From Macrostomum hystrix (taxonomy: Eukaryota > Animalia > Platyhelminthes), in contig CATNEN010000035.1 of NCBI GenBank assembly GCA_950097015.1, positions 682,001 to 746,000 of the forward strand: a DNA stretch of 64,000 nt. Reading direction: 5' to 3'. The translations under genes and the position numbers were made by a program. Below are positions 1-58,100 of this stretch, in pieces. Position 1 is the first letter of the stretch. Each line of letters opens with the position of its first letter. The notes under the pieces are model-generated. The model was given only the letters and a program-made list of their open reading frames with translations, was not told the origin of the DNA and did no database searches.

Positions 1-1412
1 TTGCTTGCTGCCGCTGCGTGATTGGCTGTTAGATTTTGCTTGGTGTGCGACAGGCTGTAAAATGACATTAAGCATTGATTGTATCTTATTTTTCAAATAT
101 AAACCTAAACAATAAAGCATATTAGAATGTATTTTTTGCGAATTTCTCAACAAAATTAAAACCATCTACAGTGTGTCCTATATATTTTATATGTTGATGG
201 ATACATTTATTAAGTAGACTAAAATTTTGAACTTTAACTTTGAAGGCTATATTTCAATATTAAGTTATCCAGTAAGTACCACAAAAATGGACATTAAACA
301 AGACTCATATTTTTTCTTTTTATAATAAACTAGGAAAATATAAATGTTTTTGTAAATAACACTGAACCAATTCAAACAGGGGTTGGTCATCTCCAGACCA
401 AAAGCTGGCCTTTTGGCCCACAAAAACTCTCTATAGGCCTACAGCCATTTAAGCTTGTTTATATTTTATTATTATTTTAACTACTCTATTATTATACTGA
501 ATATATATTTTTTTGGCACAAAAACTTTCCAACATAAAATAGGTAATTTATTTCATCACTTGTGGATTTTCAGGACAAATGAGCAATGACACTTGAAATG
601 AATCAAAGTGGCTATTTACAAAGGCTAGACAGCACATCAGATACAACTTTAAATATAGGAGCTGACAAAGGAAATTAGGGTGGTACAGCTGACAAACAAC
701 ATTAGATGGAATTAGCCTTTATAGTTTTAGAACCACTGGAGCCTATAGGGAAGAAAAATGATTTAAATGAGCTTTATATTGATAGCACCAAAAGTTGAGA
801 AAACTTCACCTTTCAAAACCCTTTTTTTCAAGCATCCAAGCATCATGATACGCTTTTTATCATAAATTATTTACTAAATATGTCATTAAAAGCTTAAGAT
901 ATGGAACTTTACTAGTCAATTGTGTACTAAATAATTAGTATTTATAGCTAAATTACAATTGTTAGCAAAATTGTTTTATCAGCAAATAATTGTCACTGAA
1001 ATGGTTGTTGCCAAAGTGGACTGGATTCATTGAGATGATGCCATAATCTTTAAACATCTCACTTAGAATTTTGAATAATTGGCTTGGAAATAGAATTAAC
1101 TCAAGTGTCGACACTCCTAAGCTAGTATATGACTAGAAGCAATAGCTGTCTGTCTGTCTCCATCTCTAATATATTGTTGAGTGCTCGTTTTTTGGGCATT
1201 AGTGCACTTTCAGTTGCGAAATTATTTTTCAGTTTAAATTTGTATGTTCGAAACTAGAATATACGCTTAAAATTATATGAATAAACCAGAATATATGCTA
1301 ATATATGCTTTAGTCTTAGTCTATGGTCGAAATCCTTAAGAGTGCGTGTGGGATGCTCTATTATTATTTTTTCATTAAATCTGTGCCATGCCTTTTTTGT
1401 GCCACGCTTGAA

Positions 1413-38900: not shown

Positions 38901-41900
38901 ATGTGTAGAAATCTAGCTTCTTTTGTCACGTCACTATTCCAATCTCCGTGAACCCGCCGAACATCTTTCAATGTAATGCACAAAGTCCCGTCAAGCCGAC
39001 GACTAATGGCCTGCGTTGTCACGACAGGAGCAGCAGGAAAGTCTGCCACAAGCTTTTGCTGCATTTCTTTTAGCGTTACAGTCGGCTTCTCTTCCACGTA
39101 CCTCGTCAATGCCTCGAGCATCTCCTCAGTGAACTTTGGTCTCACCACACCTCCACGCGCGTTAAGTTCAATCCTATCTTCATCTACATATCTTCTGATA
39201 ATGTCATTGGCAGTCGTCCTCTTGATGTCCAGTTCAACTGCGAGAAGTCTCCAGTCTCGTCCCTGTTGAAAACATCGCACGAGTCTAGAGCGATCCACAG
39301 ACGAAATTCTCATATATGGCATCTCTGACAACAATAAGAGCAGGAAATGAGTAATGAAAGATTGCTGACTTATTTTACATTGACGAATTTCACTCACTTT
39401 CTCGCTTAAATTTACACTGGGCACTTTGCTTTCTTGCCATAGACGAAGCGAAGACACTTTCTGATCAGGCTGCTTTTGCACTGACGAATTTCACTTACTT
39501 TGACGAATTCGAAGTCACTTTCTCGAAAAAAATTACCATAGACACCCCTTCTCATTCCCTTAAGCGCTCTATAGTTTTATATAGGCTGACGAATTCGAAC
39601 TCACTTTTGACGAATTCGAAGTTGAAAAGGTATATTATTTTTTATTTTAATTTTTTTGAAACGCGCACATTGATTGGGTGCTGATTTTTGTTTATTTGAT
39701 GTTGTTAACAAGGCTGAGCGATTCGATTTAAATCTAAAAAATTTAAAATTAAAATGGTTATCTAAAAATCTAAAAAAAGTAAATTTAAAAAAATGTGATA
39801 CACCCCCTACGGCTACACCCCACTCCGCGCCCTGCCACTCCGCGCCCTGCCACTCCGCGGCCTGCCACTTCGGGCCCTGCCAACTAAAAACCAAAAACAA
39901 AAACAGTATATAATGGAACACCAAAACACTAAACGCCAGCACCCAAGTCGCTACGCTACTTAAAGTGGCAGTAGAAGTATTTTATTTGATTTTGAGTACT
40001 CGATAGTAATCCTTGAAAGTTCTTCTTTCAATATCTTGGTCTTGTTGGATGCACTATAAAAAGGTAGGTTTGGTTCAAATCTCTAAGCGCTTGCAAGCGT
40101 ATGACTGTAAGAATTGTATTAACTTGTCAGGCTGACAAATTCTGACAAATATAAAATTCTGACCTTGCTGTGTGTCAGCAATCTACCAATAACTACCAAT
40201 CTTACTTTTGAGTAGCATAATTTAACATCATTTTTAACATCATTTCATCATTTTTAACATCATTTCAGGCCCAAATAATCTCCTTATTGGGTCAAGCTGT
40301 CCGCTATTATAAAAAGTACAAGTCACCAAGAACTAAACAGCAGCTGTGTGAGTTTTCCTACTTTTTATTAGTTGCTCTACTAGAATAGAACACTAATTAA
40401 ACATGTCTAAACACATCATGTTTTACAAAAAATGTTTTAGATGTTCAGATGAGCGAAGAGCATTACAATGCCAAGCAGTATTCGGAGTGTCTGAGGTAAT
40501 TATCTATACATCTTATCCATAATTGCAAGAATTAGAAACCAATGAAAGTTCATTAATAACTGGAGCCTTTTCATTATCGATTGGTATATAATTTTTATCA
40601 TCGATTGGGATCTTTTTTATTATCAATCGGGATCTTTTTCATAATCGATTGGGATATTTTTCATTATCAATAGAGATATTAATTATCAATAAGGATATTT
40701 TTTTTTCGATTGGGATACTCTTCATTATCGATTGGGATATTTTTCATTATCGATTAGGATATTCTTCATTATCGATTGGGATATTTTTCATTATCGATTG
40801 GGATATTTTTCATTATCGATTAGGATATTCTTCATTATCGATTGGGATATTTTTCATTATCGATTGTGATATTTTTTATTACCGATTGGGATATTTTTCA
40901 TAATCGATTGGGATATTTTTCATTATCGATTGGGATATTTTTCATTAAATTCGGATCATTTTCATTATCGATAGGGATATTTTTCATTACCGATTGGGAT
41001 ATTTTTCATTATCGATTGGGATATTTTTCATTATCAATTAAGATCCTCTCGATAGCTGTATTTTTCATTATTGATTGGAATATTTTCCCTTGATCGTTTC
41101 TAACTCGATTTGACTCCGCCCCGTCTTCAGCTGCCTCGTAGCCGTCCTAGACGACTACAGACGCGAAGGCTGGTGGACTATTCTCACGTGCATCCTGCAG
41201 CTCTGTCTCCGAGCCGCCTACGCCATAGCGGCGCCCCAGCCCTACGTGCACGCCTGTCTGGAGCTCATGAACTCGCGTGCCTGCCTGCCCGAACAGGATC
41301 GCCAGCGAATCCAGAGCGGCCTGGCGCAGCTCGTCAGCACCGGAGCTCCGCCGCCTCCGGCCCAGCTGCCTGCTGCCGACAGCGCCGAGGCTCAGTCGGC
41401 CTGGGAGGCGGCGGCCGCGGCTGCTTCCGGTGAACAACGAGAAATTCTAGTCGATATGGACAAGTTGAAAGCGTTTGTCAAATGCCGGGTGGCCTTCACT
41501 TCGAAGTCATACGAGGCTAATCAGCCAGTGTGTCTGCAGGTCTACCTGCTGTGAGAAGGCGATTGCAGATACTTTAGTTCGTTGACTATCCCCCAATCCA
41601 TTGACTTCTATCCCCCAATCCATTGACTTCTATCCCCCAATCCATTGACTTCTATCCCCCAATCCATTGACTTCTATCCCCCAATCCATTGACTTCTATC
41701 CCCCAATCCATTGACTTCTATCCCCCAATCCATTGACTTCTATCCCCCAATCCGTTGACTTCTATCCCCCAATCCATTGACTTCTCTCCCCCAATCCATT
41801 GACTTCTATCCCCCAATCCGTTGACTTCTATCCCCCAATCCATTGACTTCTATCCCCCAATCCATTGACTTCTCCCCCAATCCATTGACTTCTATCCCCC

Positions 41901-44900
41901 AATCCATTGACTTCTATCCCCCAATCCATTGACTTCTCCCCCAATCCATTGACTTCTATCCCCCAATCCATTGACTTCTATCCCCCAATCCATTGACTTC
42001 TATCCCCCAATCCATTGACTTCTATCCCCCAATCCATTGACTTCTATCCCCCAATCCATTGACTTCTATCCCACAATCCGTTGACTTCTATCCCCCAATC
42101 CATTGACTTCTATCCCCCAATCCATTGACTTCTATCCCCCAATCCATTGACTTCTATCCCCCAATCCGTTGACTTCTGTCCCCCAATCCATTGACTTCTA
42201 TCCCCCAATCCATTGACTTCTATCCCCCAATCCGTTGACTTCTATCCCCCAATCCGTTGACTTCTATCCCCCAATCCATTGACTTCTATCCCCCAATCCA
42301 TTGACTTCTCCCCCAATCCATTGACTTCTATCCCCCAATCCGTTGAATTCTCCCCCAATCCATTGACTTCTCCCCCAATCCATTGACTTCTCCCCCAATC
42401 CATTGACTTCTCCCCCAATCCATTGACTTCTCCCCCAATCCATTGACTTCTCCCCCAATCCATTGACTTCTATCCCCCAATCCATTGACTTCTATCCCCC
42501 AATCCATTGACTTCTATCCCCCAATCCATTGACTTCTATCCCCCAAACCGTTGAATTCTCCCCCAATCCATTGACTTCTCCCCCAATCCATTGACTTCTC
42601 CCCCAATCCATTGACTTCTCCCCCAATCCATTGACTTCTATCCCCCAATCCTTTGACTTCTATCCCCCAATCCTTTGACTTCTATCCCCCAATCCTTTGA
42701 CTTCTATCACCCAATTAAGCTACTTCTAATACCCCCAGGTCACTCAGAGCAATCCCATAATTCCGTGTAATTCCCCAACCCTGCCTGGCAGCTGCGACTG
42801 TGTTCAGGAGATCGAGTTCAGCCAGCTAAGCGTCCAGTTCACCAACACGGCCTACAATGATCGGTGCAGCCTGGCTGACCGGCGGCAGCTGACTCTGCGG
42901 CCCAACCGGCCAGCCTGCCTGACATTTCAGCTGGCAGCTGAGCCGCAGGACACCGGCCGGGAGCTCGGTGTCACTTCCGTCTCCCTAGTCACTTCCGGTG
43001 TTGGCCTGTCACTCCGTCTGCGCTGGAAGATTGACACTGCTGCGGCTGCCATTGAAAATCCGTTTCACGCCGATGCCATATTTACCGCTGTAGGAACTGC
43101 TAACAATGCCAGCTCAGGTTTATCCTCAACTGGCATTGCCGACTGGGCTGAGCTGAGAAACCGGCCATTCACGCGGTAAGTCCTTCATCATCAGGCAGCT
43201 AGGTTTCCAGCATCAGGCAGCTAGGTTTCCAGCATCAGGCAGCTAGTTTTCCAGCATCAGGCAGCTAGTTTTCCAGCATCAGGCAGCTAGTTTTCCAGCA
43301 TCAGGCAGCTAGTTTTCCAGCATCAGGAAGTTAGGTTTCCAGCATCAAGAAGTTAGGTCTCCAGTATCAGGCAGCTAGGCTTCCAGCATCAGGCTGCTAG
43401 GCTTCCAGCATCATGAAGTTAGGTTTCCAGCATCAGAAAGCTAGGTCTCCAGCATCATAAAGTTAGGTTTCCAGCATCATGAAGTTAGGTCTCCAGCATC
43501 AGAAAGCTAGTTTTCCACCACCGGACAAAACCAATACTAAAACTTGAGATCTCTGTGTATCTCTTTCAGAATCGTGCCTAAAGCCGCTCAGGTCTCCGTG
43601 AACGTAACCCACGAGTCGCCAGCTCTTGTGAACGAGTTCTATCCGGTCACCCTGGCTCTGCGCAACAATGAGCCAACCCGGATATTCAACTGCCGACTTT
43701 CCCTGGCTCTGGTGTTCAATCAGCAGCAGCAGCAGCAATCGTCGGTGTCTTCAGATCGTGGCTTCCACATGTCGTGCGACCCGGTTGCACCGGCAGTTCC
43801 AGTCGACCGGCTGACCGACCTGGACCTCGGCGTCATTGAAGTTGGCGCCACTGTGTCTCGGACATTCTACTGCCAGATCTTTCAACCTGGGGATAAGGAA
43901 ATTAGCATTTCGGTTAGTATCTGTCGATGTTGATTATTGCATATGCATCTTCATGCCAAGGACTATTCAGATAATAGCGCTGATAAGTCTACGAACAAAG
44001 ACCTAAGATTTACTAATATCCTGCGTACAAAAAGCTCCACGAAACATAGCGGACAAAGACCTCACTTAACCATTGCTTGAAGTAAGTGTACTGAAAAATC
44101 TACTTTTTTGCTTGGTTCTGAGTGGCTTAGTTTGAGGTTTGCGTAGTAGTGACTTGGTGAGATGCACCTTATTCTGTGCAACCAAAGCTAATTTAAAAAT
44201 AGCTTAACCCCTGCCTTTGTGCGTTGGGCCGGGTGTGAGGCGTAGAGGCAAAATGGGCGGTGGGGCGGGTGTGCACCAATGATATAGTAATAATCATTGC
44301 GACTGTGTTCTTTGCAGTACGAATAGCCGTTTATCACTGGCATTGTATACTTTTGGACCACAGACAGTTGGGGCGTGCAACAATCAGTCTCACGGAGCGG
44401 ATATAGCCAGCGGTCTCGCGGGGCGTGCAGCAATCGATTATTTTGTCGATTGGTGCACGCCCGAAATGTCTATGGTCCAAAAGTAGACCGCCTGACTTAG
44501 GGCAGCAAGAGAACTCAGTTTGGGGAAGGCTGTAAGACAGCGAGACGAGCTGGCGGGGTTCGGGACATAGACAGTAAAGGCGTGCAACAATCAGGCTTCA
44601 TTGGTGGCTGGGAAAAAACCCCTCCAAAAGTGTACAATGTGTACTCTCGTCCCTACCCTCACGCATTTAAGTCCTCCCCTGGTCTTGTCTGTTCTGTGCG
44701 TGTGCGGGCCTGGGGTGAGAGGCACTCCGGCTGCCGCCCCCTTCCCCGCTTGGCTTGCTGCTGTGTGTGAGGTGCCTGTTTCCAGGGGTCTAGAAGGCGC
44801 GATGGGCGACTCCCGCCTAGTTCGCCGGCCTGGGGGCATGCCATTCCTGCGCTCGTGCGTCAAGTGCCCCAGGCCCCCCTGCAAATAAGTAAAAATAAGT

Positions 44901-47900
44901 GAAGAGAAGTGTACTGCACAGCCTCAAGATGAGAAAGTCAGGGCAGTTGTACACACCTGTGTGAGCGTATGCCTGAGTACGGTATCTGTGTGCGTGTGTG
45001 CTCAGGAGTCAGCAAAATGGGCCGAATTGCCTCACGCTGGTTGCGGTTCTAGTGTCACGAATTGATTTGCCACTGCCCGCAGCCCTCTTGCAATTATTGT
45101 TAAAAGTTTGATTAACTATTTTTTTTTCTTTTTTTCTGTTTGCTTCGTGCTGTCCTAGGTGGTATATGATACAGAGGTGCCGGTTCTGGGCCAGCCAATC
45201 GTTTGTTCAGCTTCACTGACGGACTCGTTCACTGTGTCCTGCATTACTCCGTTTGAGATTGTGTCCGATGTGCAGTCAATGTCGGTAAGAATGTTTTCTA
45301 AGCTGAGCTGAACGGCTTTAATCGCATTCACCGCTCTCTGGAGTCAATGAGACTTAGCATCCTCAAAAATCTCTTACTCCGTCAGAACTGATGTACAGTC
45401 ATGTTACTCAATCCGATCTGTCAGTCAATCCGATCTATCACTCAATCCGATCTATCACTCAATCCGATCTATCAGTCAATCCGATCTGTCACTCAATCCG
45501 ATCTGTCACTCAATCCGATCTATCAGTCAATCCGATCTGTCAGTCAATCCGATCTATCACTCAATCCGATCTATCAGTCAATCCGATCTGTCACTCAATC
45601 CGATCTGTCACTCAATCCGATCTATCAGTCAATCCGATCTGTCACTCAATCCGATCTATCACTCATCCGATCTGTCACTCAATCTGATCTATCAGTCAAT
45701 CCGATCTGTCACTCAATCCGATCTATCAGTCAATCCGATCTGTCACTCAATCCGATCTGTCACTCAATCCGATCTGTCAGTCAATCCGATCTATCAGTCA
45801 ATCCGATCTATCAGTCAATCCGATCTGTCAGTTAATCCGATCTGTCAGTCAATCTGATCTGTCACTCAATCCGATCTATCAGTCAATCCGATCTGTCACT
45901 CAATCCGATCTGTCAGTCAATCCGATCTATCAGTCAATCCGATCTGTCACTCAATCCGATCTATCACTCATCCGATCTGTCACTCAATCTGATCTATCAG
46001 TCAATCCGATCTGTCACTCAATCCGATCTATCAGTCAATCCGATCTGTCACTCAATCCGATCTGTCACTCAATCCGATCTGTCAGTCAATCCGATCTATC
46101 AGTCAATCCGATCTATCAGTCAATCCGATCTGTCAGTTAATCCGATCTGTCAGTCAATCTGATCTGTCACTCAATCCGATCTATCAGTCAATCCGATCTG
46201 TCACTCAATCCGATCTGTCAGTCAATCCGATCTATCAGTCAATCCGATCTGTCACTCAATCCGATCTGTCACTCAATCCGATCTGTCAGTCAATCCGATC
46301 TATCAGTCAATCCGATCTATCAGTCAATCCGATCTGTCAGTTAATCCGATCTGTCACTCAATCCGATCTATCAGTCAATCCGATCTGTCAGTCAATCAGT
46401 GTCCGCTCACTCCCAACCCGCCAGTTCGCGTCCACTCCGTCCGTGTCGGTGCGGGACCCGTTCGTTCTGTCCGCCACCACTCGCAGCCAGTCGCCCTGGC
46501 CGTTGGACATTGCGGGCAGCCAGCTGCGCCTCAGCCAGCACGTCCGCGTGGCCGACGACGACGACTCGGCGACGACAGAGACGGAATTGTCGGCTGACGA
46601 CGGAATCGGGCTAAAGAGCTCTCAGCTGTCTGGTCGTGAGTGCATTGAACGAATTCGTACATGTATTTCTAAGAACTAGAAGCCCTTTATTTTGCTGTTC
46701 GGTTATTGGACTCCGTAAAATGTAACTTATATTTTTTATCGACAAAAAAGCTAAATGTTTGTTGCAGTTCTTCTAGCTGACGACAAGAATCCCGGTAATT
46801 TAAATCTGAAATCGCTTTCATATCCACTATGAACTACTTATTGCCGCTAATCGATTCCAGTAGTGCGACGTGATAATAATTTGCGTGTGATTTTTCAGTT
46901 GTTTTTAAAAACGAATGATTTGATATTTTGCAATAATAACTGTCTCTAGTGTGTTATGACGGATGATGTGTACTACGCTCGTAGCAATGTGTAGTAGCTG
47001 CGCATGTCGGCTTGAGATTCTAGTCTAAAAAGTCCAAAGGAGCTTCTTCTAAGTTATTCATTCGCTAATTTTTACGATGCTGTACGTGTAGCTTGCATCT
47101 CGCATGTACCTATTTTATACTAGTTGTAGATCGTTTCCATTAGCAGTTTGAAGCTGCCATGTACACTATTTTTTAATGCAAAAGTGCAAGAATGTTCGAG
47201 TAGAGGAGGGGTGGGTAGAGAAGGGGTGGGTAAAGGAGAGAGAAGAGAAGGGGTGGGTAGAGAAGGGATTGGTAGAGGAGAGAAGAGGAGGGGTTGGGAA
47301 GAGGAGAGAAGAGGAGAGGTGGGTAGAGGAGAGAAGAGGAGGGGTGGGTAGAGGAGAGAAGAGAAGGGGTGGGTAGAGGAGAGAAGAGGAGGTGTGGGTA
47401 GAGGTGAGAAGAGAAGGGGTGGGTAGAGGAGAGAAGAGGAAGGGTGGGTAGGGGAGAGAAGAGAAGGGGTGGGTAGAGGAGAGAAGAGGAGGGGTGGGTA
47501 GAGGAGAGAAGAGGAAGGGTGGGTAGGGGAGAGAAGAGAAGGGGTGGGTAGAGGAGAGAAGAGGAGGGGTGGGTAGAGGAGAGAAGAGGAAGGGTGGGTA
47601 GGGGAGAGAAGAGAAGGGGTGGTTAGAGGAGAGAAGAGGAGGGGTGGGTAGAGGAGAGAAGAGGAAGGGTGGGTAGGGGAGAGAAGAGAAGGGGTGGGTA
47701 GAGGAGAGAAGAGGAGGGGTGGGTAGAGGAGAGAAGAGGAGGGGTGGGTAGAGGAGAGAAGAGAAAGGGTAGAGGAGAGAATAGTATGTAGAGCCGCTCG
47801 TCAGCGTACTTATTGTCTTTCTTTCCTAATGCAGTCTTCATCCCGATCCCCTCCATACTCAGTGACCGTAAAGGAATCCGAGTGCCTAACCGAGTGCTGG

Positions 47901-49563
47901 ATTCTCACGGCCGACACGGTTCGAACTCAGAACTTTCGTCTGGGCGCTTACGTGATTCGTTGGCGACGTCGCAGGCCGCAGCAGCAGCGCACAGAAGAAC
48001 AGTCGCATTCGTTTTCGGACAGTTTGCAGCAGGACCTACCCATTGTGAGCACTGTGGTGCCCCTGCCTACAGTGAATCTGTACAATCTGCCTCTGTGTGT
48101 CACCCTCAAGCTGCCGCCCTCTGGCACAGTCTACCAGCCGGTCTCGCTGTCCTACAGCCTGGAAAACCGGACTGCCTATCCGCAAGAGGTCCAATTCAGC
48201 GTTGACCGCAGCGACTGCTTTATGTTCTCTGGCATGAAGAGCGTAAGCTGACAGGCTGCAGTCTAGGGCCATGGGATCTGTGTGTTATGTGGGATAGAGG
48301 AAGCTGGTATCCAGGTAGATGGGATCTGTGTGTTATGTGGGATAGAGGAAGCTGGTATCCAGGTAGATGGGATCTGTGTATTTTGTGGGATAGTGGAAGC
48401 TGGGATCCAGGTTGGGAGGATCTGTATTTTGTGGGATAGAGGAATCTGGGATCCAGGTAGAGAGGATCTGTATTTTGTGGGATAGAGGAAGCTGGTATCC
48501 AGGTAGAGAGGATCTGTATTTTGTGGGATAGAGGAAGCTGGTATCCAGGTAGAGAGGATCTGTATTTTGTGGGATAGAGGAAGCTGGTATCCAGGTAGAG
48601 AGGATCTGTATTTTGTGGGATAGAGGAAGCTGGTATCCAGGTAGAGAGGATCTGTATTTTGTGGGATAGAGGAAGCTGGTATCCAGGTAGAGAGGATCTG
48701 TATTTTTTGGGATAGAGGAATCTGGTATCCAGGTAGAGAGGATCTGTATTTTGTGGGATAGAGGAAGCTGGTATCCAGGTAGAGAGGATCTGTATTTTGT
48801 GGGATAGAGGAAGCTGGTATCCATGTAGAGAGGATCTGTATTTTGTGGGATAGAGGAAGCTGGTATCCAGGTGGAGAGGATCTGTATTTTGTGGGATAGA
48901 GGAAGCTGGTATCCAGGTAGAGAGGATCTGTATTTTGTGGGATAGAGGAAGCTGGTATCCATGTAGAGAGGATCTGTATTTTGTGGGATAGAGGAAGCTG
49001 GGATCCAGGTAGAGAGGATCTGTATTTTGTGGGATAGAGGAAGCTGGTATCCAGGTAGAGAGGATCTGTATTTTGTGGGATAGAGGAAGCTGGTATCCAG
49101 GTAGAGAGGATCTGTATTTTGTGGGATAGAGGAAGCTGGTATCCAGGTAGAGAGGATCTGTATTTTGTGGGATAGAGGAAGCTGGTATCCAGGTAGAGAG
49201 GATCTGTATTTTGTGGGACCAAAGCCTTTTTAGCAATGGCTATAGGATGAAGGAGAAAAGTGTTTTCAGAATATATTTTCCATAAATAAATGATTAGTTT
49301 AAATCGGCGCCGCCCCGCAGGTGACCTTCCGCATCCTGCCGCAGACAACTCACATCCTGGAGTATGGCGCCTACCCCATGACTACCGGCCTGCTGGAGCT
49401 GCCCCGCATTGGCATCCGGTTGGACGGCACCGAGGTGCCAGTCTACACCCTGCTGAAGGACCTGCCCTCTCATCTGTTTGTAGCCCCTCCTGGCAAGTCC
49501 AGTTCAGACAGGCAGCAGCAGCAGCAGCTTTTGAACAACGGCGGAAACCTTGTCGAAGTGTGA
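29985..49563 (+). CDS. TRAPPC11: Trafficking protein particle complex subunit 11, ~1170 aa; exons 29985-30215, 31233-31616, 32690-32785, 32872-33119, 35167-35308, 37480-37650, 40269-40347, 40441-40495, 41131-41550, 42792-43175, 43570-43912, 45159-45284, 46425-46635, 47863-48242, 49321-49563
   Basis: Recognisable blocks: [59 protein letters not shown]. All 14 introns are GT-AG with consistent phases. Confidence 0.95.
30335..30980. repeat. Minisatellite, 18-nt unit (TAGTGTCCTCTACCCACC, ~35 copies), TRAPPC11 intron 1
   Basis: Direct inspection. Confidence 0.95.
31820..32165. repeat. Minisatellite, 17-nt unit (ATCTAATCAGACAGGAT, ~20 copies), TRAPPC11 intron 2
   Basis: Direct inspection. A separate ~75-nt tandem duplication follows at 32316-32500. 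Confidence 0.95.
33185..33710. mobile_element. Non-autonomous DNA transposon (family C), copy 2, TRAPPC11 intron 4
   Basis: TIR CAGTAGAACTACC / GGTAGTCCTACTG, flanked by TTAC and TTAA. Interior homologous to 12448-13028. Confidence 0.75.
33913..34168 (-). CDS. Candidate nested antisense micro-gene, 54 aa; exons 34168-34029 and 33937-33913
   Basis: GC-rich island with [52 protein letters not shown] donor, 91-nt intron ending TTTTTTAG, and two CCAAT boxes ~170-200 nt upstream. No homolog recognised. Confidence 0.3.
35335..37350. repeat. Minisatellite, 29-30-nt unit (GAACTGAATGATCTGGGATGGAGTCTGATA, ~65 copies) with higher-order blocks, TRAPPC11 intron 5
   Basis: Direct inspection. Confidence 0.95.
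37705..37905 (-). mobile_element. SINE family B copy, TRAPPC11 intron 6
   Basis: Reverse complement contains GGGTTCGATTC, GCATTGCTTCAGTTCA..GTTAAATGGGTACCAGCAT and GGCGTCCCTCCAGTCCATGGACTGAACAG. Confidence 0.8.
38004..39630 (-). mobile_element. Autonomous-looking IS630/Tc1/mariner DNA transposon with ~152-bp IR/DR-type TIRs and TA target duplication
   Basis: TIRs at 38004-38155 and 39476-39630 differ at only ~5 positions. TA at 38002-38003 and 39631-39632. The motif TTCGAATTCGTCA recurs ~4 times per TIR. Confidence 0.92.
38267..39322 (-). CDS. IS630/Tc1-type DDE transposase, 351 aa, intact ORF
   Basis: N-terminal HTH-like region, [14 protein letters not shown] and [13 protein letters not shown]. 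There are 30 residues between the second D and the E. Confidence 0.9.
   Translation of the reverse strand: MPYMRISSVDRSRLVRCFQQGRDWRLLAVELDIKRTTANDIIRRYVDEDRIELNARGGVVRPKFTEEMLEALTRYVEEKPTVTLKEMQQKLVADFPAAPVVTTQAISRRLDGTLCITLKDVRRVHGDWNSDVTKEARFLHMTWMLETGLFVRNLIYVDECGCNLWTARTKGWADFGNRAVMIANSQRGQNLTVALAVSPQLGLVHHRIFVGGFTAERFREFMIEVGTLVDDEFTVLADNARAHGVVNFGRPDQRLQFLPPYSPFLNATEMAISCMKAALKRRMTDPEVVFEVHDRQAAVAAGETLQNRRLRILSREVEAAMVAITEEKCRQWHEFTLRYGPRCLAHGEILD
39805..39885. repeat. 15-nt subterminal-type repeat (GCCACTCCGCGCCCT, ~5 copies), probable end of another DNA transposon
   Basis: Short GC-rich array in AT-rich sequence. Partner end not found. Confidence 0.5.
40560..41085. repeat. Degenerate 22-nt minisatellite (TTTTCATTATCGATTGGGATAT), TRAPPC11 intron 8
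   Basis: Direct inspection. Confidence 0.9.
41588..42712. repeat. Minisatellite, 20-22-nt unit (TCCCCCAATCCATTGACTTCTA, ~50 copies), TRAPPC11 intron 9
   Basis: Direct inspection. Confidence 0.95.
43193..43515. repeat. Minisatellite, 22-nt unit (CATCAGGCAGCTAGGTTTCCAG, ~14 copies), TRAPPC11 intron 10
   Basis: Direct inspection. Confidence 0.9.
44341..44639. mobile_element. MITE-like element with nested inverted repeats, TRAPPC11 intron 11
   Basis: CATTGTATACTTTTGGA (44341) vs TCCAAAAGTGTACAATG (to 44639). Inner IR TACTTTTGGACCACAGAC / GTCTATGGTCCAAAAGTA. GGCGTGCAACAATC occurs 3-4 times. Confidence 0.6.
44905..45110 (+). mobile_element. SINE family A 3' part
   Basis: GATGAGAAAGTC...TGTACACACCTGTGTGAG...GCTCAGGAGTCAGC...GCCCGCAGCCCTC, as at 58680-58850. 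Confidence 0.75.
45405..46395. repeat. Minisatellite, 17-nt unit (TCAATCCGATCTRTCAS, ~58 copies) with a ~300-nt higher-order duplication, TRAPPC11 intron 12
   Basis: Direct inspection. Confidence 0.95.
47195..47780. repeat. Purine-rich 25-nt minisatellite (GGGGTGGGTAGAGGAGAGAAGAGGA, ~23 copies), TRAPPC11 intron 13
   Basis: Direct inspection. Confidence 0.95.
48270..49218. repeat. Minisatellite, 46-nt unit (GGGATAGAGGAAGCTGGTATCCAGGTAGAGAGGATCTGTATTTTGT, ~20 copies), TRAPPC11 intron 14
   Basis: Direct inspection. It explains the minus-strand ORFs at 48220-49348. Confidence 0.95.
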
Positions 49564-52500
49564 CAGATCTGATTGGTCCTGTTTTGCCCGATGCCTCTTC
49601 TTACTTCGACTTTCCTGAGTTCTTACAGACTCCACGAAACCTTTACTACCTAATTTATTGGCCCTAAATCCTATTATCTCTTTTATCTGGTAGTATTCTA
49701 TTCGCTCTACTAATAGTAGATAATATTGACAACTTCGCCCCTAATGAACAGTGTTCCTCTGCCTTCACGTTTCGACTGCTTTCAAATGCTTTCGCATTGT
49801 AGACTTTGCTTGTGATTTGCTATTGTTGAATGTTTTTCTTTTCAGCACTACTATTCAAATGCCATAAGTATGCTTTGCAATGTGCCCGTTAACTATTATA
49901 AAAGTTCTGGTGTTTAAGCTAGTTGTGAAATTGATTTACAATCTACGTAATATATGTGACCTCACTATTCTGATGCATCGTTAATTTGTACGTCTAATGC
50001 CACACTTATTACACGTCTCAGTAGTACACTTAATTGTTCTCTGTTAAATGTTACGTTAGCTTCTATTTTTTGCTTTTCGTTCGCAGTAGATAAAATATTG
50101 TCTTATTCTTTGCTTTATTTTGTCCCTAGTTCAGTTATAGTTTCTTGCTTATCTGGCCGTACACAGAGCTGTGTACATGAAGTCATATGTATTAAGTCCG
50201 TTGATTTTGTCAGAGATTTTTAAATTGATGATTTATATTGGCCTAGCTAAAGCTGCATTGAATATGAATCTGAAACTTTATTTTAATTGTGGAATTAAAC
50301 CAATAAAATTCTGTCAACCAACAATTGCGGTATTATAAGCTATAAGTTTCATATCAATTTAACTTGATCATCTTTAAATTCTTTATCAAGTGATGCGTCA
50401 CGTTAAGCATGTTTCTGGGTAAAATACAAGGTATTTTCCGAGTCTTGAAGTAATGTGTATAATTTTAGGGAATACTATTAAGTTTTGCCCTCATTCACAA
50501 AGCACAAGTTTTTCTTTAAACATCTTTATTGTTTCCTAAGTTTGCTGTTCATTTATGAGCCAGTACTTTAGGAACAAACCTGCAGTAGTTATACGCCAAT
50601 TTGAGCAAAATTTCCATTGTTGGCAAACTACCTAATAATACTCCATTAAGAGTTTAACGATTCCCCAGAGCTGGTAATCTCTAATCCCTAATATTGCTCC
50701 CTTTATAATCAACAGGATTAAGAAGAGCTGACACGTCAATTATTTTTTCATTATTAAGCTAACCTATCAAATATTTTAGGCAATCAAATCGAAATGTTAA
50801 GTTTGATTTAAACGAAATGCGGAGATATACAAAACTACACTGTCCTTAACTTAACGTTAAGTTTAAAATAGGAATAAAATTGCGAGGCAAGGAGAGGACA
50901 ACAGTAATGTCTAGTCTTAATATCTCGGTAGAGAAGCAGATACTTATTTTTTCGCACTTGAACAGCACACTTCAGAGCTGTACTTCAGCAAGCCATGCTT
51001 TTATAGATTATCAAGCATTGAATTTATATATATAATGTAGAAAATCATACGAAAAATGTACTTCGATTTTGTTTTTTCTTAGTTGAGTGCTGCTCCAAGC
51101 ATTTTTTAAATAATCAGCGCCGTTAGTTTCTTAGAACACGAGAGAATAGTACTGCATCTTCTAAGTAAGTAACCCTGCGTTTACGAAGTTCAGCGTTTTG
51201 TCCTGCATGTCTTTTTCTGCATTTTTATAAAATATTTCGTGTTTTCACCGTTTTCCGAGTATAGCCACACTATCTTGATGCATATTGATGTCCATTGTGA
51301 CATATGTTAAGTCATAAATTACTAGAATACAGTATAACTAGCTGTAAGTAAAATTATACATTCATAAAAAATATCAAGTAAAAAACGGTTTTGTCGATAA
51401 AAGAAATTATCCTTGTTAAAAACTTTGTAAAAACTTCTATGCTACAGTAAAAATTGAGCTACTTAAGACTAAGTTCCTGAAACCATACAGATTTACAGAT
51501 ACAGTGAAACCATCATAGGCCTAAACCATGCAGAATAGGGCCTACAGTGCCCAGTGGAAAGTAAGCAGAAAATTTTCTAGGATATGTAAAATACATGTGT
51601 TTTGAAATTCTTAATTTACCTTTACTTAATAGCACATTGGATTATTATAATAAATTGTTTATTTTTTTAGCTATATGTACAGCAGTAGGCCTACAGATAG
51701 AACAAAGTGTCCAGGTAATTTGTCTAATTAGTCCAGGTAAATTTGTCCAGGTAACTGGACAAATAGCCATTTGATTATTCGTCTGGTTAACCAAGTTATA
51801 ACTTATAAGTAAGTTATAAGGGGTTGTAGCGCTACCCCGAGAACCTTTCATTTGTAAGATAAAATAATTAACAGGCTGCAAAAGGACAGTCATTCAATTT
51901 TGAAGTTTGTGTCTCAAATTATCTTCACTTAGGCCTATCAGCTAATTTAATAAATTAAAACCTTTTCCAGAAATTTGGTTGTTTCAGGGACTAACTTAGT
52001 TCAAGGGTATAGTTTGGTCTTTGTGAGGTCAAGACTCAAGATGGCTCTCAGCAGGGCAAGAGTGGTCTTTGGGAGGATTGTTGCTCCTGCTCATTGAAAG
52101 GGAAGAAATTAAGTCCTTGGGTGGTTAACCAGTTAACTGGACAAATAATCAAACCTTATTTTTTAGGTTTGCCTATGTAAAAATAATTTGATTTTGGCCT
52201 AGGTTCTAGACATTAAAAACGAGGAGGCAATAGTTGGCACCAATTCAAACTCAATGGTTTTGGCAATAAACATGTGACATGGCATGACTAGTTGGATCAA
52301 ATTCAGACTAATGCACCATATAATTAATTATAAAATTATGCAAAAGAAAGTGTAATTTAGGCCCCTAGGCCTATGAGTAACTATCAACAATTTTAAAGGT
52401 CTAAATTGATTTGGTCAATATATTTCACTATGTGTATATGTAACTATATATATAATTTTTTAATTCCTTATCACTTTTATTTTTAACAAAACTTTTTTAT

Positions 52501-54358
52501 CACATTCTATTTAGAATTGTTTCTTATAATATTCAAAAGAGCAGCTACATATATTGATAGGAGCTTTGTTACCTTAGTAACAAATTAGATTTAGTTTTTA
52601 ATATTAGCTTTACCTAGAGCTAGAGCCAAGGTCAGACAATATACCAAAAGTTTAATTTATTTATTTATTTAACTTATTTAATTTTAACTTCTTGACACAG
52701 TACAAATGAATCTTGAATTTATAATATCGTCAAATCATTTTTTTCTATTTTCTAAAAGGCCATTGTTTTTTAGATACTTTTCTAAAATATGGTCACTATA
52801 TATGCCAGGGGTAAACAAAATGGGCAGTTCCTCCACCTATGCTTCATATCTTCATTGGAATGTATTTGAGAGAAGTCACTTGACTATTCATATACTTTTT
52901 GTTGCAAACTGGATTTACAAATCTGGTAAACTGACCCAGTTCTTATTCTGGTTTTGATGTCTTACTGGAATTGCAGGTACTAATAAAGTACTGGAATTTC
53001 AATCAGTTTTCATTAGCAAACTGGATTTGTGTTCATGATTATGCAAGCTATATTGTTATCTTTTCGTTTTCAATTTTAGATGCTAAAAATAAATATTAAT
53101 TAAATAATGATTACTATTAAGAGTTCGAATTTTTGGGGATATCTGGAGATTGATTCCAACAGACAGCAGCCAATCTTTTTGACATGAGTTGCTATCCCAT
53201 CAAGCTATCTCTGGAATCCACCTTGTCGGCGGCACAAAACCTCTCCATATAGATTTGAAACTGTGTCACTCTCAATGTGAGGCCGCACCTATCATTTGTA
53301 TGCACAACTGACTTGGTTTTATTATGAGTCGGTTGTATTGCATACAAATGTTTGACTCCTATTGGCATGTAGTCAGTCACAGGTGTGTACTATAGTACCA
53401 CTGGTACAGCTGGGTGTCTAAGTCAGAATCTGTGGCATAATTCAGTTTTAGCAAGCCCAGTGAGATAAACACACCAATTTCTATTAAGACAGGTGCAATT
53501 CAGATTTAAGTAAGTATGCTCCAATAGTTTGTCTTAAGCAGCTGCAGTTTCAGATATGAGCTTAGTATTGAGTAGTCTGTCCTTGCTCTATTATAAACAG
53601 ACTACCTACTTCTGTTACCTGTGCTGTTACAACCTTGCTCTTTCCTTGCCTATTTAGATTTTCTTCCACTGCATCTCATAATAACTTTACTATTACTTAC
53701 ACACTCCATGCATTGACTACATAACATACTTAATTACTTACCACAGATTTAATACTATTATCTGCTGTCTGTAATATCTGTAATTCCCACTTTCTAGGAA
53801 ACACTTCTAAGAAAACTCCTATGCCAGTTCTGTGTTGTACTGTGTTGTAGCAAGCCAGTACTGATTTTTCTGTTAACACATCTGTTAGCAAATTGGGCAA
53901 CATGCCTGTTATTGGTTAAATTTCTAGATCTTACAGTTTAGCAAACCGGATTTAATTCTGTTTCACCTGGTAACAACTCTGGTACCTGTAGCATTTCGTA
54001 ACACAATTCTGGTTTTTAACTCTGCCACTAACAGAATACCATTACCAGATTTGACACTTGCGTACCATACTGGTCATCTTACCGGTCGAGCTACCGGTTA
54101 AGTTAGCCAGAGGGAATTTTGGGATAAGCTTTGTTGTATTTTTGTAGTCCTAAGGAGTTTAATTTTGTCACACTCTTGCTGATATTGCAGGAATGCGGTT
54201 TGTTAAATCTAATATTTCTTAGAATATATATGTATATATATTGCTATATATTCAATATTTTCACTTAACTTATCTGAACCTAAAACATTGGAAAAGATTT
54301 CTCATACATAGGATCAACTTTATACTATCATCACATTTTAAGCAAAAAAATATAAACA

Positions 54359-54904
54359 ATGTCTGTTGCTTATCTAAAAAACTGCGTCTCACTGACCAAT
54401 CGCTGCCTAATTGTCTGCTGGAATCGTTATTTAGCCAGGCTTGCCACCAGACAGCAGTCAACAAGCCTGACATTGTCACAATTCAGGAGCGCGCCAATTA
54501 GTCGACATCTGTGCTCATCAGTTGAGGCTCAAGTTAATAGGCAATCTAATTCATCAATAATTTGTTATAAATGCCTCAAACCAGGCCATCTGGCTAAGGA
54601 CTGTACGAGTTCTGGCCGATTGTGCCGCCGCTGCGGCCAGGAGGGTCACGTGACTAAGGACTGCCAGTCGCCAGTCCGGTGTCGACTCTGCGGCGATGAA
54701 GGCCACTTGGCGAAGGATTGCAAATCGTTTAAATTGCGTTGCTACAGATGCGGCCAACTGGGTCACATTGCCAAGGATTGTAAGTCTGCGGCTCTGTGCC
54801 TCAACTGCGGCCATGAGGGTCACATTGCGAAAGATTGCAAACTGCCTGTTCGGTGTCGCAACTGCGGCCAAGAGGGTCACATATCTACTAGCTGTCCGAA
54901 CTAA
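54359..54904 (+). CDS. Single-exon CNBP-like protein with six CCHC zinc knuckles and a mitochondrial-presequence-like N-terminus, 181 aa
   Basis: Six C-x2-C-x4-H-x4-C motifs with 5-6-residue linkers. A-rich ATG context. AATAAA at 54952. The first 55 aa have 7 K/R, no D/E, and end in RHLCSS. Confidence 0.85.
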   Translation: MSVAYLKNCVSLTNRCLIVCWNRYLARLATRQQSTSLTLSQFRSAPISRHLCSSVEAQVNRQSNSSIICYKCLKPGHLAKDCTSSGRLCRRCGQEGHVTKDCQSPVRCRLCGDEGHLAKDCKSFKLRCYRCGQLGHIAKDCKSAALCLNCGHEGHIAKDCKLPVRCRNCGQEGHISTSCPN

Positions 54905-55104
54905 CAATTGTTTATTTTTTATCCATTACTTTGGTTTTACTTTGAGCTTGAAATAAAAAGTTAGCACCTTGTTGAAATGATTTTTCATGTTTTCTGCCCA
55001 ACCTATTTTCTTTTGTAAATCGATCTATCAGTTTTAGCATAGCTGTTTCCTATGTTTCTACTGCCAGTAGTGAATTCAGCGATTTTTCCGATACATTTTT
55101 GCAG

Positions 55105-58100
55105 CCTACCGACGAGCTGCTAAAGTGCGGCCTGCTGTTCGAGCCGCCCACCCTGCTGCTGCTGTACAGACGGGGCGGTCTGCTTGGCCGGACACGGAAG
55201 CGATCCGTGCCCCTGGCGGCGCTGATGGCCGAGGCCAAGAAGGCCACCAACGAGCCTGAAGCTAACTATTCGCCGCGTGCACTCGCTGAAAGACTCAAAC
55301 AGGTGCGATTCAGTTCTGCCTTCGTTTTCTTTTCATCAAGTAATGTTTCTTATGCCTCATCGAAGTCGATATTCAGAATATATTATTGATTCCTAAATCA
55401 ATCACTTGATACCTAAATCCATCACTTGATCCCTAAACCATCACTTGATCCCTAAATCCATCAATTGATCCCCAAATCCATCACTTGATCCCTAAATCCA
55501 TCAATTGATCCCCAAATCCATAACTTGATCCCTAAATCCACCAATTGATCCCTAAATCCATCACTTGATCCCTAAATCCATCCATTGATCCCTACATCCA
55601 TCACTTGATCCCTAGATCCATCCATTGATCCCTACATCCATAACTTGATACCTAAATCCATCACTTGATCCCTAAACCCATCACTTGATCCCTAGATCCA
55701 TCCATTGATCCCTACATCCATAACTTGATACCTAAATCCATCACTTGATCCCTAAATCCATCACTTGATCCCTAAATCCATCCATTGATCCCTACATCCA
55801 TCACTTGATCCCTAGATCCATCCATTGATCCCTACATCCATAACTTGATACCTAAATCCATCACTTGATCCCTGAATCCATCAATTGATCCCCAAATCCA
55901 TCACTTGATCCCTAAATCCATAAATTGATCCCCAAATCCATCACTTGATCCCTAAATCTATCAATTGATCCCTAAATCCATCACTTGATCCCTAAATCCA
56001 TCCATTGATCCCTACATCCATAACTTTATCCCTAGATCCATAAATTGATCCCCAAATCCATCAATTGATCCCTATATCCATCAATTGATCCCTAAATCCA
56101 TCAATTGATCCCTAAACCCTTCAATGGATCCATTAATCCACCATTGACCCCAAATTAAACACCGATAATCTATTTTAAGCAATTGATACCGAAATCCTTA
56201 ACTAATTCCTAAATCCATCATTGATCTTAAATTCAATGTTGATTCCTAAATGGATCATTGATCCCTTAATTCAACATCGATCCGTAATTCACATTAATCC
56301 TTATGCCCACCACCGATCCAAAATTAAATATTGATCCTAAATCTATCATTTATCCGTAATTCAGTTCTAACCCAAAGTTCATAGTTGATCTTAATTAATA
56401 ATTATCCCAGGCTTTAAAATTTATTATGGATCCTAAATATTTCTTATCCCCAATCCATCATTGGTCCAAAAGTCTTAAAAGAATCCATGTATTTTAGCTA
56501 ATAGATTTTTTATTCTAATTCATCTTCTAAGGTTTTAATAATTGCCCTAAGTCAGCCAATCTGTTTCTATGTGCCCACTGCCCACTACCTTTTTCTATCG
56601 AAAAATGCAGGACAAGCGCCACGGGGATCTGATTAAGCAGGTGAGTCAGCTCCAGTTAGAGCGCCTACTGGCCATTGTCCGTGACGTCACAATAGGCGGC
56701 CTCAGCAAAGAGCAGAGCCTGGCCAAACAGCGCCAGATGGAGAAGATCGATCCGCTGGAGGATCTCAACAAGGTGGACGAAGAGACCCTGCAGCGAAAGA
56801 AGGCCGCAATGCAGGTGAGAACCAATGCAGGTGGTTAGGGTGTCGGAATCACGACTTCAAGGTCGGGGGTTCGACTCCCGACTCAAGTGGAACAAATTTT
56901 GTCCTTTAGCAAGACACTTAACTCTGCATTGCTTCAGTTCACCCAGCTGTTAAATGGGTACCAGCATTAGCTGAGATAATTTAAAGTGGGTGTGGCGTCC
57001 CCCAGTCCATGGACTGAACAGCTGAACGCAGCCTTCAGATGCGCCGCGCAATAGCTGCGGCTGTGCTGTCGCTTGCACATCTGGTCGACTTGGGGCAGGT
57101 GTAATAAATTATTTTATTATTCATATCGTGTCTCTATCCGAATCCTATTTAGAGGGTGGGGATAATTTTGTGTCGCTATCCGAATCCCATCTAGAGAATG
57201 GGGATTATTTAGTGTCCATATCCAAATCCCATCTAGAGAATGGGGATTATTTAGTGTCCATATCCAAATCCCATCTAGAGAATGGGGATTATTTAGTGTC
57301 CATATCCAAATCCCATCTAGAGAATGGGGATTATTTAGTGTCCATATCCAAATCCCATCTAGAGAATGGGGATTATTTAGTGTCCATATCCAAATCCCAT
57401 CTAGAGAATGGGATTATTTTGTGTCCATATCCAAATCCCATCTAGAGAATGGGGATTATTTAATGTCTATATCCTAATACTATCTAGAGAATGGGGATTA
57501 TTTAATGTCTATATCCAAATACCATCTAGAGAATGGGGATTATTTAATGTCTATATCCAAATACTATCTAGAGAATGGGGATTATTTAGTGTCTATATCC
57601 GAATCCCATCTAGAGAATGGGGATTATTTAGTGTCTATATCCGAATCCCATCTAGAGAATGGGGATTATTTTGTGTCGCTCTCCGAATCCCATCTAGAGA
57701 ATGGGGATTATTTTGTGTCTATATCCAAATACCATCTAGAGAATGGGGATTATTTAGTGTCTATATCCGAATCCCATCTAGAGAATGGGGATTATTTAGT
57801 GTCTATATCCGAATCCCATCTAGAGAATGGGGATTATTTTGTGTCGCTCTCCGAATCCCATCTAGAGAATGGGGATAATTTTGTGTCTCTATTCGAATCC
57901 GATCTAGACAATAGGGAAAAATTTATGTCGCTTTACAATTCCGATGGCAGATCCTTCCACACCCTTTCCATCCTATGTTATTTGCGGACATTCTGTCCCT
58001 CTAACTCCCAGCCTTTATAAAAGTCTATCTGAAGGTCATATTTCCTCAACTCTATGCGCTTGCAATGTGAAACAGATGTGAAAATATTTTCTTTCTTACG

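Follow-up and report, generated by a model that had tools for sequence, protein, structure and literature searches.

Animal CNBP-type arrays of CCHC zinc knuckles are known to bind G-rich single strands in the cytosol or nucleus, and UMSBP, a well-studied mitochondrial example of a CCHC array, is kinetoplastid. A preliminary description of a 64,000-nucleotide stretch of Macrostomum hystrix DNA (the window) pointed out an intronless gene for six such knuckles preceded by what looked like a mitochondrial targeting peptide. This raises the question whether a knuckle protein of an animal might act in mitochondria, a case of which the preliminary description knew no precedent; correspondingly, no animal mitochondrial CCHC-knuckle nucleic-acid-binding protein was found in the literature that we searched. 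Here we explore the gene, its transcript, its homologue in M. lignano and its relation to known knuckle families in order to weigh this reading against its alternatives.

The knuckle gene, its transcript and its neighbours

The intronless ORF encodes 181 amino acids. Screening the protein with the regular expression C-X2-C-X4-H-X4-C yielded six knuckles and Pfam zf-CCHC (PF00098) matched six stretches with an E-value of 1e-38, in line with the architecture described before. Matches to solved structures comprised Air2 and retroviral nucleocapsids and correspond to the generic knuckle module. Part of the array consists of a tandem repeat with a 57-nt unit, which shows that knuckle units have multiplied through tandem duplication. 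In the M. lignano homologue, 39 amino acids are missing in the region of this repeat.

Logan contigs of public runs were aligned to positions 53000-55380 of the window. Contigs of the CCHC transcript stem from three runs (X2-X4) of a single study and show the dominant form. They are colinear with either 54342-54947 or 54342-54996 and free of joints, hence unspliced through the coding region as the preliminary description had supposed. In these contigs 54342 is directly preceded by 22 nt of spliced leader (SL), and the same 22 extra letters were found before 55104. With the shared G added, these letters are identical to the 3' end of the 35-nt spliced leader of M. lignano as given in PMC8629364, a leader that is highly conserved across Macrostomum species (PMC10468722), so the letters alone mark the window as DNA of a Macrostomum flatworm. 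SL trans-splicing of the CCHC mRNA uses the AG at 54341-54342, which lies 16 nt 5' of the ATG. Neither an mRNA that begins downstream of 54359 nor another exon spliced into the knuckles, either of which had been named as incompatible with the mitochondrial proposal, was seen: the spliced leader is joined upstream and the contigs are colinear.

Codon 1 is the sole in-frame ATG of the whole ORF, which means that the leader preceding the knuckles belongs to the only AUG-initiated product. The spliced leader itself ends in AUG, which is out of frame in the CCHC mRNA (16 mod 3 = 1) and opens an overlapping ORF of 54 codons. Position -3 is occupied by T at the spliced-leader AUG versus A at the ATG at 54359. 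As the M. lignano counterpart of this ORF has only 11 codons, it was rejected as a source of a second product; it probably acts solely as an overlapping upstream ORF, most likely bypassed through leaky scanning. In Schistosoma, 28% of trans-spliced mRNAs have the AUG of the spliced leader in frame (PMC9851317).

The CCHC gene and CEP19 form a dicistron in which the CCHC gene comes first; the intergenic gap of roughly 110-160 nt is typical for Macrostomum operons (PMC8629364). The spliced leader is joined to CEP19 exon 1 with its AUG in frame, no genome-encoded ATG was found upstream of the N-terminal K-C-G...P-P motif of CEP19, and exon 1 of M. lignano CEP19 lacks any Met. For these reasons the CEP19 start codon appears to be donated by the spliced leader.

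The surroundings of the dicistron are rich in repeats. CEP19 exon 1 is spliced across an intron (55302 to 56611), most of which is filled by some 45 copies of a 20-nt tandem repeat with strong C-over-G skew (55385-56281), and about 19 copies of a 42-nt repeat lie at 57128-57917. On the 5' side, a multi-exon gene on the forward strand occupies 40000-49563 (stop codon TGA at 49561-49563), ends about 4.8 kb before the CCHC gene and carries large tandem repeats in its introns (45391-45835 and 48220-49348). It is separated from the CCHC gene by an AT-rich spacer (49700-54300) that exceeds the 1-kb rule applied to M. lignano, which would place it outside the CCHC operon. Run X1 (organism A) contains CEP19 exon 1 (55104-55303) at about 98.5% identity with the same spliced leader; no CCHC transcript was seen in this run at a likeness of at least 90%, where contigs show presence, not absence.

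Table 1. Features of the CCHC-CEP19 locus in the window (nucleotide positions of the window, amino acid positions of the 181-residue protein) and related proteins.
Feature	Position or identifier	Strand	Basis
Trans-splice acceptor, pyrimidine-rich tract and AG at 54341-54342	54325..54342	+	SL-bearing contigs
Genome-encoded 5' UTR between spliced leader and ATG, 16 nt	54343..54358	+	contigs, sequence
Out-of-frame ORF from spliced-leader AUG, 54 codons, over codons 1-48 of the main ORF	54343..54501	+	
CDS: leader, six CCHC knuckles and stop codon	54359..54904	+	ORF list, colinear transcript contigs, Pfam
Putative cleavable presequence, up to R49-H-L	54359..54511, aa 1-51	+	composition, M. lignano alignment
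Six-knuckle array	54563..54895, aa 69-179	+	regular expression, Pfam, solved-structure matches
Knuckles 1-6	aa 69-82, 89-102, 108-121, 128-141, 147-160, 166-179		regular expression
Tandem repeat, 57 nt (19 codons), 2.4 copies, 80% match	54749..54882	+	
AATAAA polyadenylation signal	54952..54957	+	sequence; contig ends 54947, 54996
Downstream cistron: trans-splice acceptor (AG 55103-55104) and CEP19 exon 1 (55105-55302)	55088..55302	+	
M. lignano copies	PAA53772.1 / PAA53773.1 / PAA84841.1; Mlig027223.g1, Mlig002438.g7, Mlig002438.g12		
Presequence-like knuckle proteins	P0206/P0215 (Fusarium), P0108 (Mycena), P0080, P0159, P0163 (L007-L009), P0177, P0203, P0207 (L004-L006)		

The leader and its counterpart in M. 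lignano

The M. lignano homologue is PAA53772.1, annotated as "hypothetical protein, partial"; its genomic ORF is complete (142 aa, L001:3010-3438). Three near-identical copies exist (L001-L003), each directly 5' of CEP19. The downstream gene was recognized as CEP19 by a PF14933 match of the called gene in L002 and L003, and the stretch downstream in L001 is 85.6% identical to CEP19 exon 1 of the window over 90 nt. The copies differ from one another by 2-3 nt, including the non-synonymous differences I12T and N31S, and from the window by about 28%. This divergence, together with the fact that the exact 181-aa protein is absent from a collection of 15 billion proteins and from the gene-position index, suggests that PAA53772.1, the syntenic homologue, is most likely the ortholog from another species. 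As in the window, the gene is intronless; a ttgcag acceptor lies 10 nt before the ATG and the frame relation to the spliced-leader AUG is the same. The protein has four knuckles versus six in the window, with an overall identity of 46%. The CCHC gene is thus real, expressed and conserved in the lineage, its M. lignano homologue being annotated as just hypothetical.

The leader comprises the 68 residues before knuckle 1 in the window and 69 residues in M. lignano. In a global alignment the pair reached a z-score of 4.1, with none of 2000 shuffles attaining the score, which indicates that the leaders are homologous. Identity amounts to 17/66 (about 26%) for the leaders and 47/73 (64%) for the knuckles, the leaders being too diverged for a reliable codon alignment. 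The identical residues cluster at the very N-terminus (M1, S2, A4, T13, R15, C16, L17, R23 and L25), and several conserved residues are encoded by differing codons (R23 CGT/AGA, L25 TTA/CTG, S44 AGC/TCT). Throughout the leader region only the main frame is open in both species, the other two being closed; 67 codons without a stop would be expected in only 1.3-2.4% of sequences of like composition. An ortholog with a conserved leader, which had been suggested as a check, was found in M. lignano: it is syntenic and its leader is of like length, acid-free, basic and hydroxyl-rich at about 26% identity.

The composition of the leader is conserved despite this low identity. Recounting residues 1-55 of the window protein reproduced the seven K/R and the lack of D/E stated earlier (nine S, eight L, four T and four A). 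Acidic residues start with E56 in the window protein and with D63 in M. lignano. Both leaders contain 10-12% K/R and 22-24% S/T, and D/E make up about 1.5% of each leader versus 7-9% of the remainder of each protein. About 49 leader residues have been replaced between the species, none of them by an acidic residue before position 56 in the window or 63 in M. lignano. A presequence-type composition, that is net positive, acid-free and rich in S/T/A/L/R, is found in both. R-x-L occurs shortly before the first acidic residue in both, as S-R-H-L-C-S in the window and T-R-C-L-H-T (R55) in M. lignano, at different alignment columns. The R49-H-L-C-S-S motif of the preliminary description is present and fits relaxed R-3 and R-10 patterns; MPP-type motifs were detected in both species, being short motifs of a kind that is common by chance.

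Tom20-like motifs (WNRYL and LARLA) are present in the leader of the window protein. The highest amphipathic moment (muH 0.75) is located at residues 21-31 and is not significantly higher than in shuffles of equal composition (p 0.13 for a width of 11 residues, 0.47 for 18). AlphaFold2 assigns residues 1-68 a pLDDT below 50, with low-confidence helices at 3-30, 39-43 and 50-62, from which the leader is predicted to be disordered or weakly helical, without a folded domain. The length of 51 residues and the four cysteines of the putative presequence are atypical of presequences. A signal peptide is unlikely and was discarded as a reading, since uncharged hydrophobic residues follow one another for at most six positions (C16-W21), with arginines on either side. 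Pfam, the exhaustive profile search and word-index searches, which used the entire protein, its leader and the leader of M. lignano as queries, yielded no family or sequence relative of the leader beyond the M. lignano protein, and a protein-language-model search for look-alikes of the leader gave nothing usable.

GC3 of leader versus knuckles is 0.41 versus 0.59 in the window and 0.51 versus 0.77 in M. lignano. Transcript contigs of two of the three runs carry A>T at 54451, a strain or allele variant that replaces R31 by S and removes one positive charge. The low GC3 of the leader and the non-synonymous variants I12T, N31S and R31S fit weak constraint.

Comparison with known knuckle proteins

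Word-index protein searches returned matches to the knuckles alone, with vertebrate CNBP at 45% identity over residues 68-181. The exhaustive profile search gave 7068 matches, nearly all of them generic knuckles, and a homologous leader in a single M. lignano cluster (P0150, which is PAA53772.1). By sequence, CNBP/ZNF9 of vertebrates, Gis2 of S. cerevisiae and Byr3 of S. pombe form the closest family; they too are small and consist almost wholly of C-X2-C-X4-H-X4-C knuckles in tandem, joined by short linkers. CNBP-type proteins have only a few residues ahead of knuckle 1 and function in the cytosol and the nucleus. The 68-residue, acid-free and basic leader sets the window protein apart from them. 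They have seven knuckles, whereas there are six in the window and four in M. lignano, and the RGG box that follows knuckle 1 in animal CNBP is absent, its place being taken by a six-residue linker (T-S-S-G-R-L). Because of the missing RGG box, the number of knuckles and the presence of a leader we file the protein as CNBP-like rather than as a CNBP ortholog; for arrays of repeats such as these a tree would carry no meaning. Roles in stress granules and polysomes have been described for CNBP-type proteins (PMC3528734).

By proposed function the closest protein is UMSBP of Crithidia, Leishmania and T. brucei, which serves as our working model. UMSBP is a small protein of multiple CCHC knuckles, and its target within mitochondria is the G-rich single-stranded DNA of origins (PMC2192376, PMC2615610); TbUMSBP2 works at telomeres too (PMC6125633). 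UMSBP is a kinetoplastid protein that binds the G-rich universal minicircle sequence at kDNA minicircle origins, whereas the Macrostomum protein is that of a flatworm, and besides the shared generic knuckles no specific sequence relationship between the two was found. The mitochondrial location that is shown for UMSBP is what we infer for the Macrostomum protein.

Nucleocapsids of retroviruses and LTR retrotransposons share the zf-CCHC module, as seen from PDB matches to HIV-1 NC, but they have one to three knuckles rather than six, and neither Gag nor protease nor RT neighbours are present here. A mobile-element (Gag) gene is ruled out by CEP19 synteny, SL trans-splicing and the number of knuckles.

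Several further CCHC proteins with multiple knuckles, found near the head of the match list, have long, acid-free, arginine-rich N-termini that resemble presequences, with a first acidic residue at 42-77 (Table 1). They were derived from fungi, from a compact genome, in which the knuckle gene adjoins a FolB-HPPK-DHPS gene, and from contigs only about 950 nt long, of which one belongs to a JGI metagenome record. Some of these N-termini may be artefacts of the gene models; the Fusarium protein contains an internal Met just before knuckle 1.

Possible location and role of the protein

We propose, at a probability of roughly 0.45, that the gene encodes a CNBP-like knuckle protein that is imported into mitochondria through a cleavable N-terminal presequence. 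Rapid sequence turnover, with length and N-terminal core retained and D/E strictly excluded, is the pattern predicted for such a presequence. The earlier mitochondrial proposal is supported in part, by the leader composition and its conservation in M. lignano; the amphipathicity does not exceed that of shuffles (p 0.13). Under this proposal ribosomes would scan past the spliced-leader AUG with its weak context and initiate at 54359. The basic, acid-free and partly helical leader, with a conserved core at residues 13-31, would engage TOM20/TIM23, and MPP would cleave at or near R49-H-L to give a mature protein of about 13-14 kDa. In the matrix this protein may bind mitochondrial DNA or RNA that is single-stranded and probably G-rich, acting either as a chaperone or as a binder of origins or transcripts. 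Flatworm mitochondrial genomes have all genes on one strand, which is strongly G+T-rich and so would provide abundant ligands for CNBP-type knuckles. It is possible, and we suggest it tentatively, that Macrostomum has an independently arisen animal counterpart of UMSBP that acts on G/T-rich single-stranded mtDNA or mtRNA.

The protein might instead be a cytosolic or nuclear CNBP-like protein, the N-terminal 68 residues of which form a fast-evolving disordered extension unrelated to organelles; such an extension might serve as an S/T-rich arm regulated by phosphorylation, as an additional basic arm for nucleic-acid binding or as a nucleolar signal. This is consistent with the 45% identity of the knuckles to CNBP, their best named match and a cytosolic and nuclear protein, and with a leader that is 26% identical, low in GC3, variable at non-synonymous sites, predicted to be disordered and not above shuffles in amphipathicity. 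Selection for nucleic-acid binding could also yield a basic, acid-free arm. Unlike such arms or nucleolar signals, though, the leader has a modest charge (10-12% K/R) and no G-rich or RGG segment. D/E are completely lacking from the first 55-62 residues of both proteins, whose species have diverged, and the most conserved block lies at the very N-terminus, as an N-terminal targeting signal predicts. We regard a non-organellar protein as rather unlikely. That the leader serves some other sorting is a smaller rival. It would be highly improbable that the leader is rarely or never made, either by a non-AUG start near the knuckles, for which in-frame CTG/TTG codons are available at positions 12, 37, 39 and 51, or by capture of most ribosomes at the upstream out-of-frame spliced-leader AUG with its 54-codon overlapping ORF. 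A frame of 68-69 codons is open in both species, by chance an event of 1.3-2.4% per species; the A at -3 of the ATG compares with a T at the spliced-leader AUG; and the N-terminal M-S-x-A is conserved, unlike the spliced-leader ORF, of which just 11 codons are present in M. lignano.

The origin of the gene is a separate matter from the location of its product and was scored separately. The preliminary description considered a retrocopy that had gained a presequence, an idea that found no support beyond the missing introns. A recent CNBP retrocopy with a newly acquired 5' coding extension would agree with an intron-free CDS and with knuckle units evolving by tandem duplication. Small intronless genes are nevertheless ordinary in genomes with SL operons, no parent gene was identified and no A-tract was seen 3' of the 3' UTR. 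Moreover, two species share both the leader and the position 5' of CEP19, so that the gene is not recent; the CEP19 first exons of these species are just 86% identical over the 90 alignable nucleotides. A recent retrocopy is accordingly improbable.

The leader-knuckle gene has so far been followed in one genus, by comparison of two species. Since transgenesis and RNAi are available in Macrostomum, the mitochondrial claim is cheap to test. If an animal counterpart of UMSBP is indeed present, the presequence-like multi-knuckle proteins of fungi and of marine eukaryote transcripts may belong to a wider, undescribed organellar class. If the protein is mitochondrial, it would offer a clear-cut example of a presequence set before a repeat protein and be a new player in the handling of animal mtDNA or mtRNA, in a flatworm that is amenable to transgenesis.
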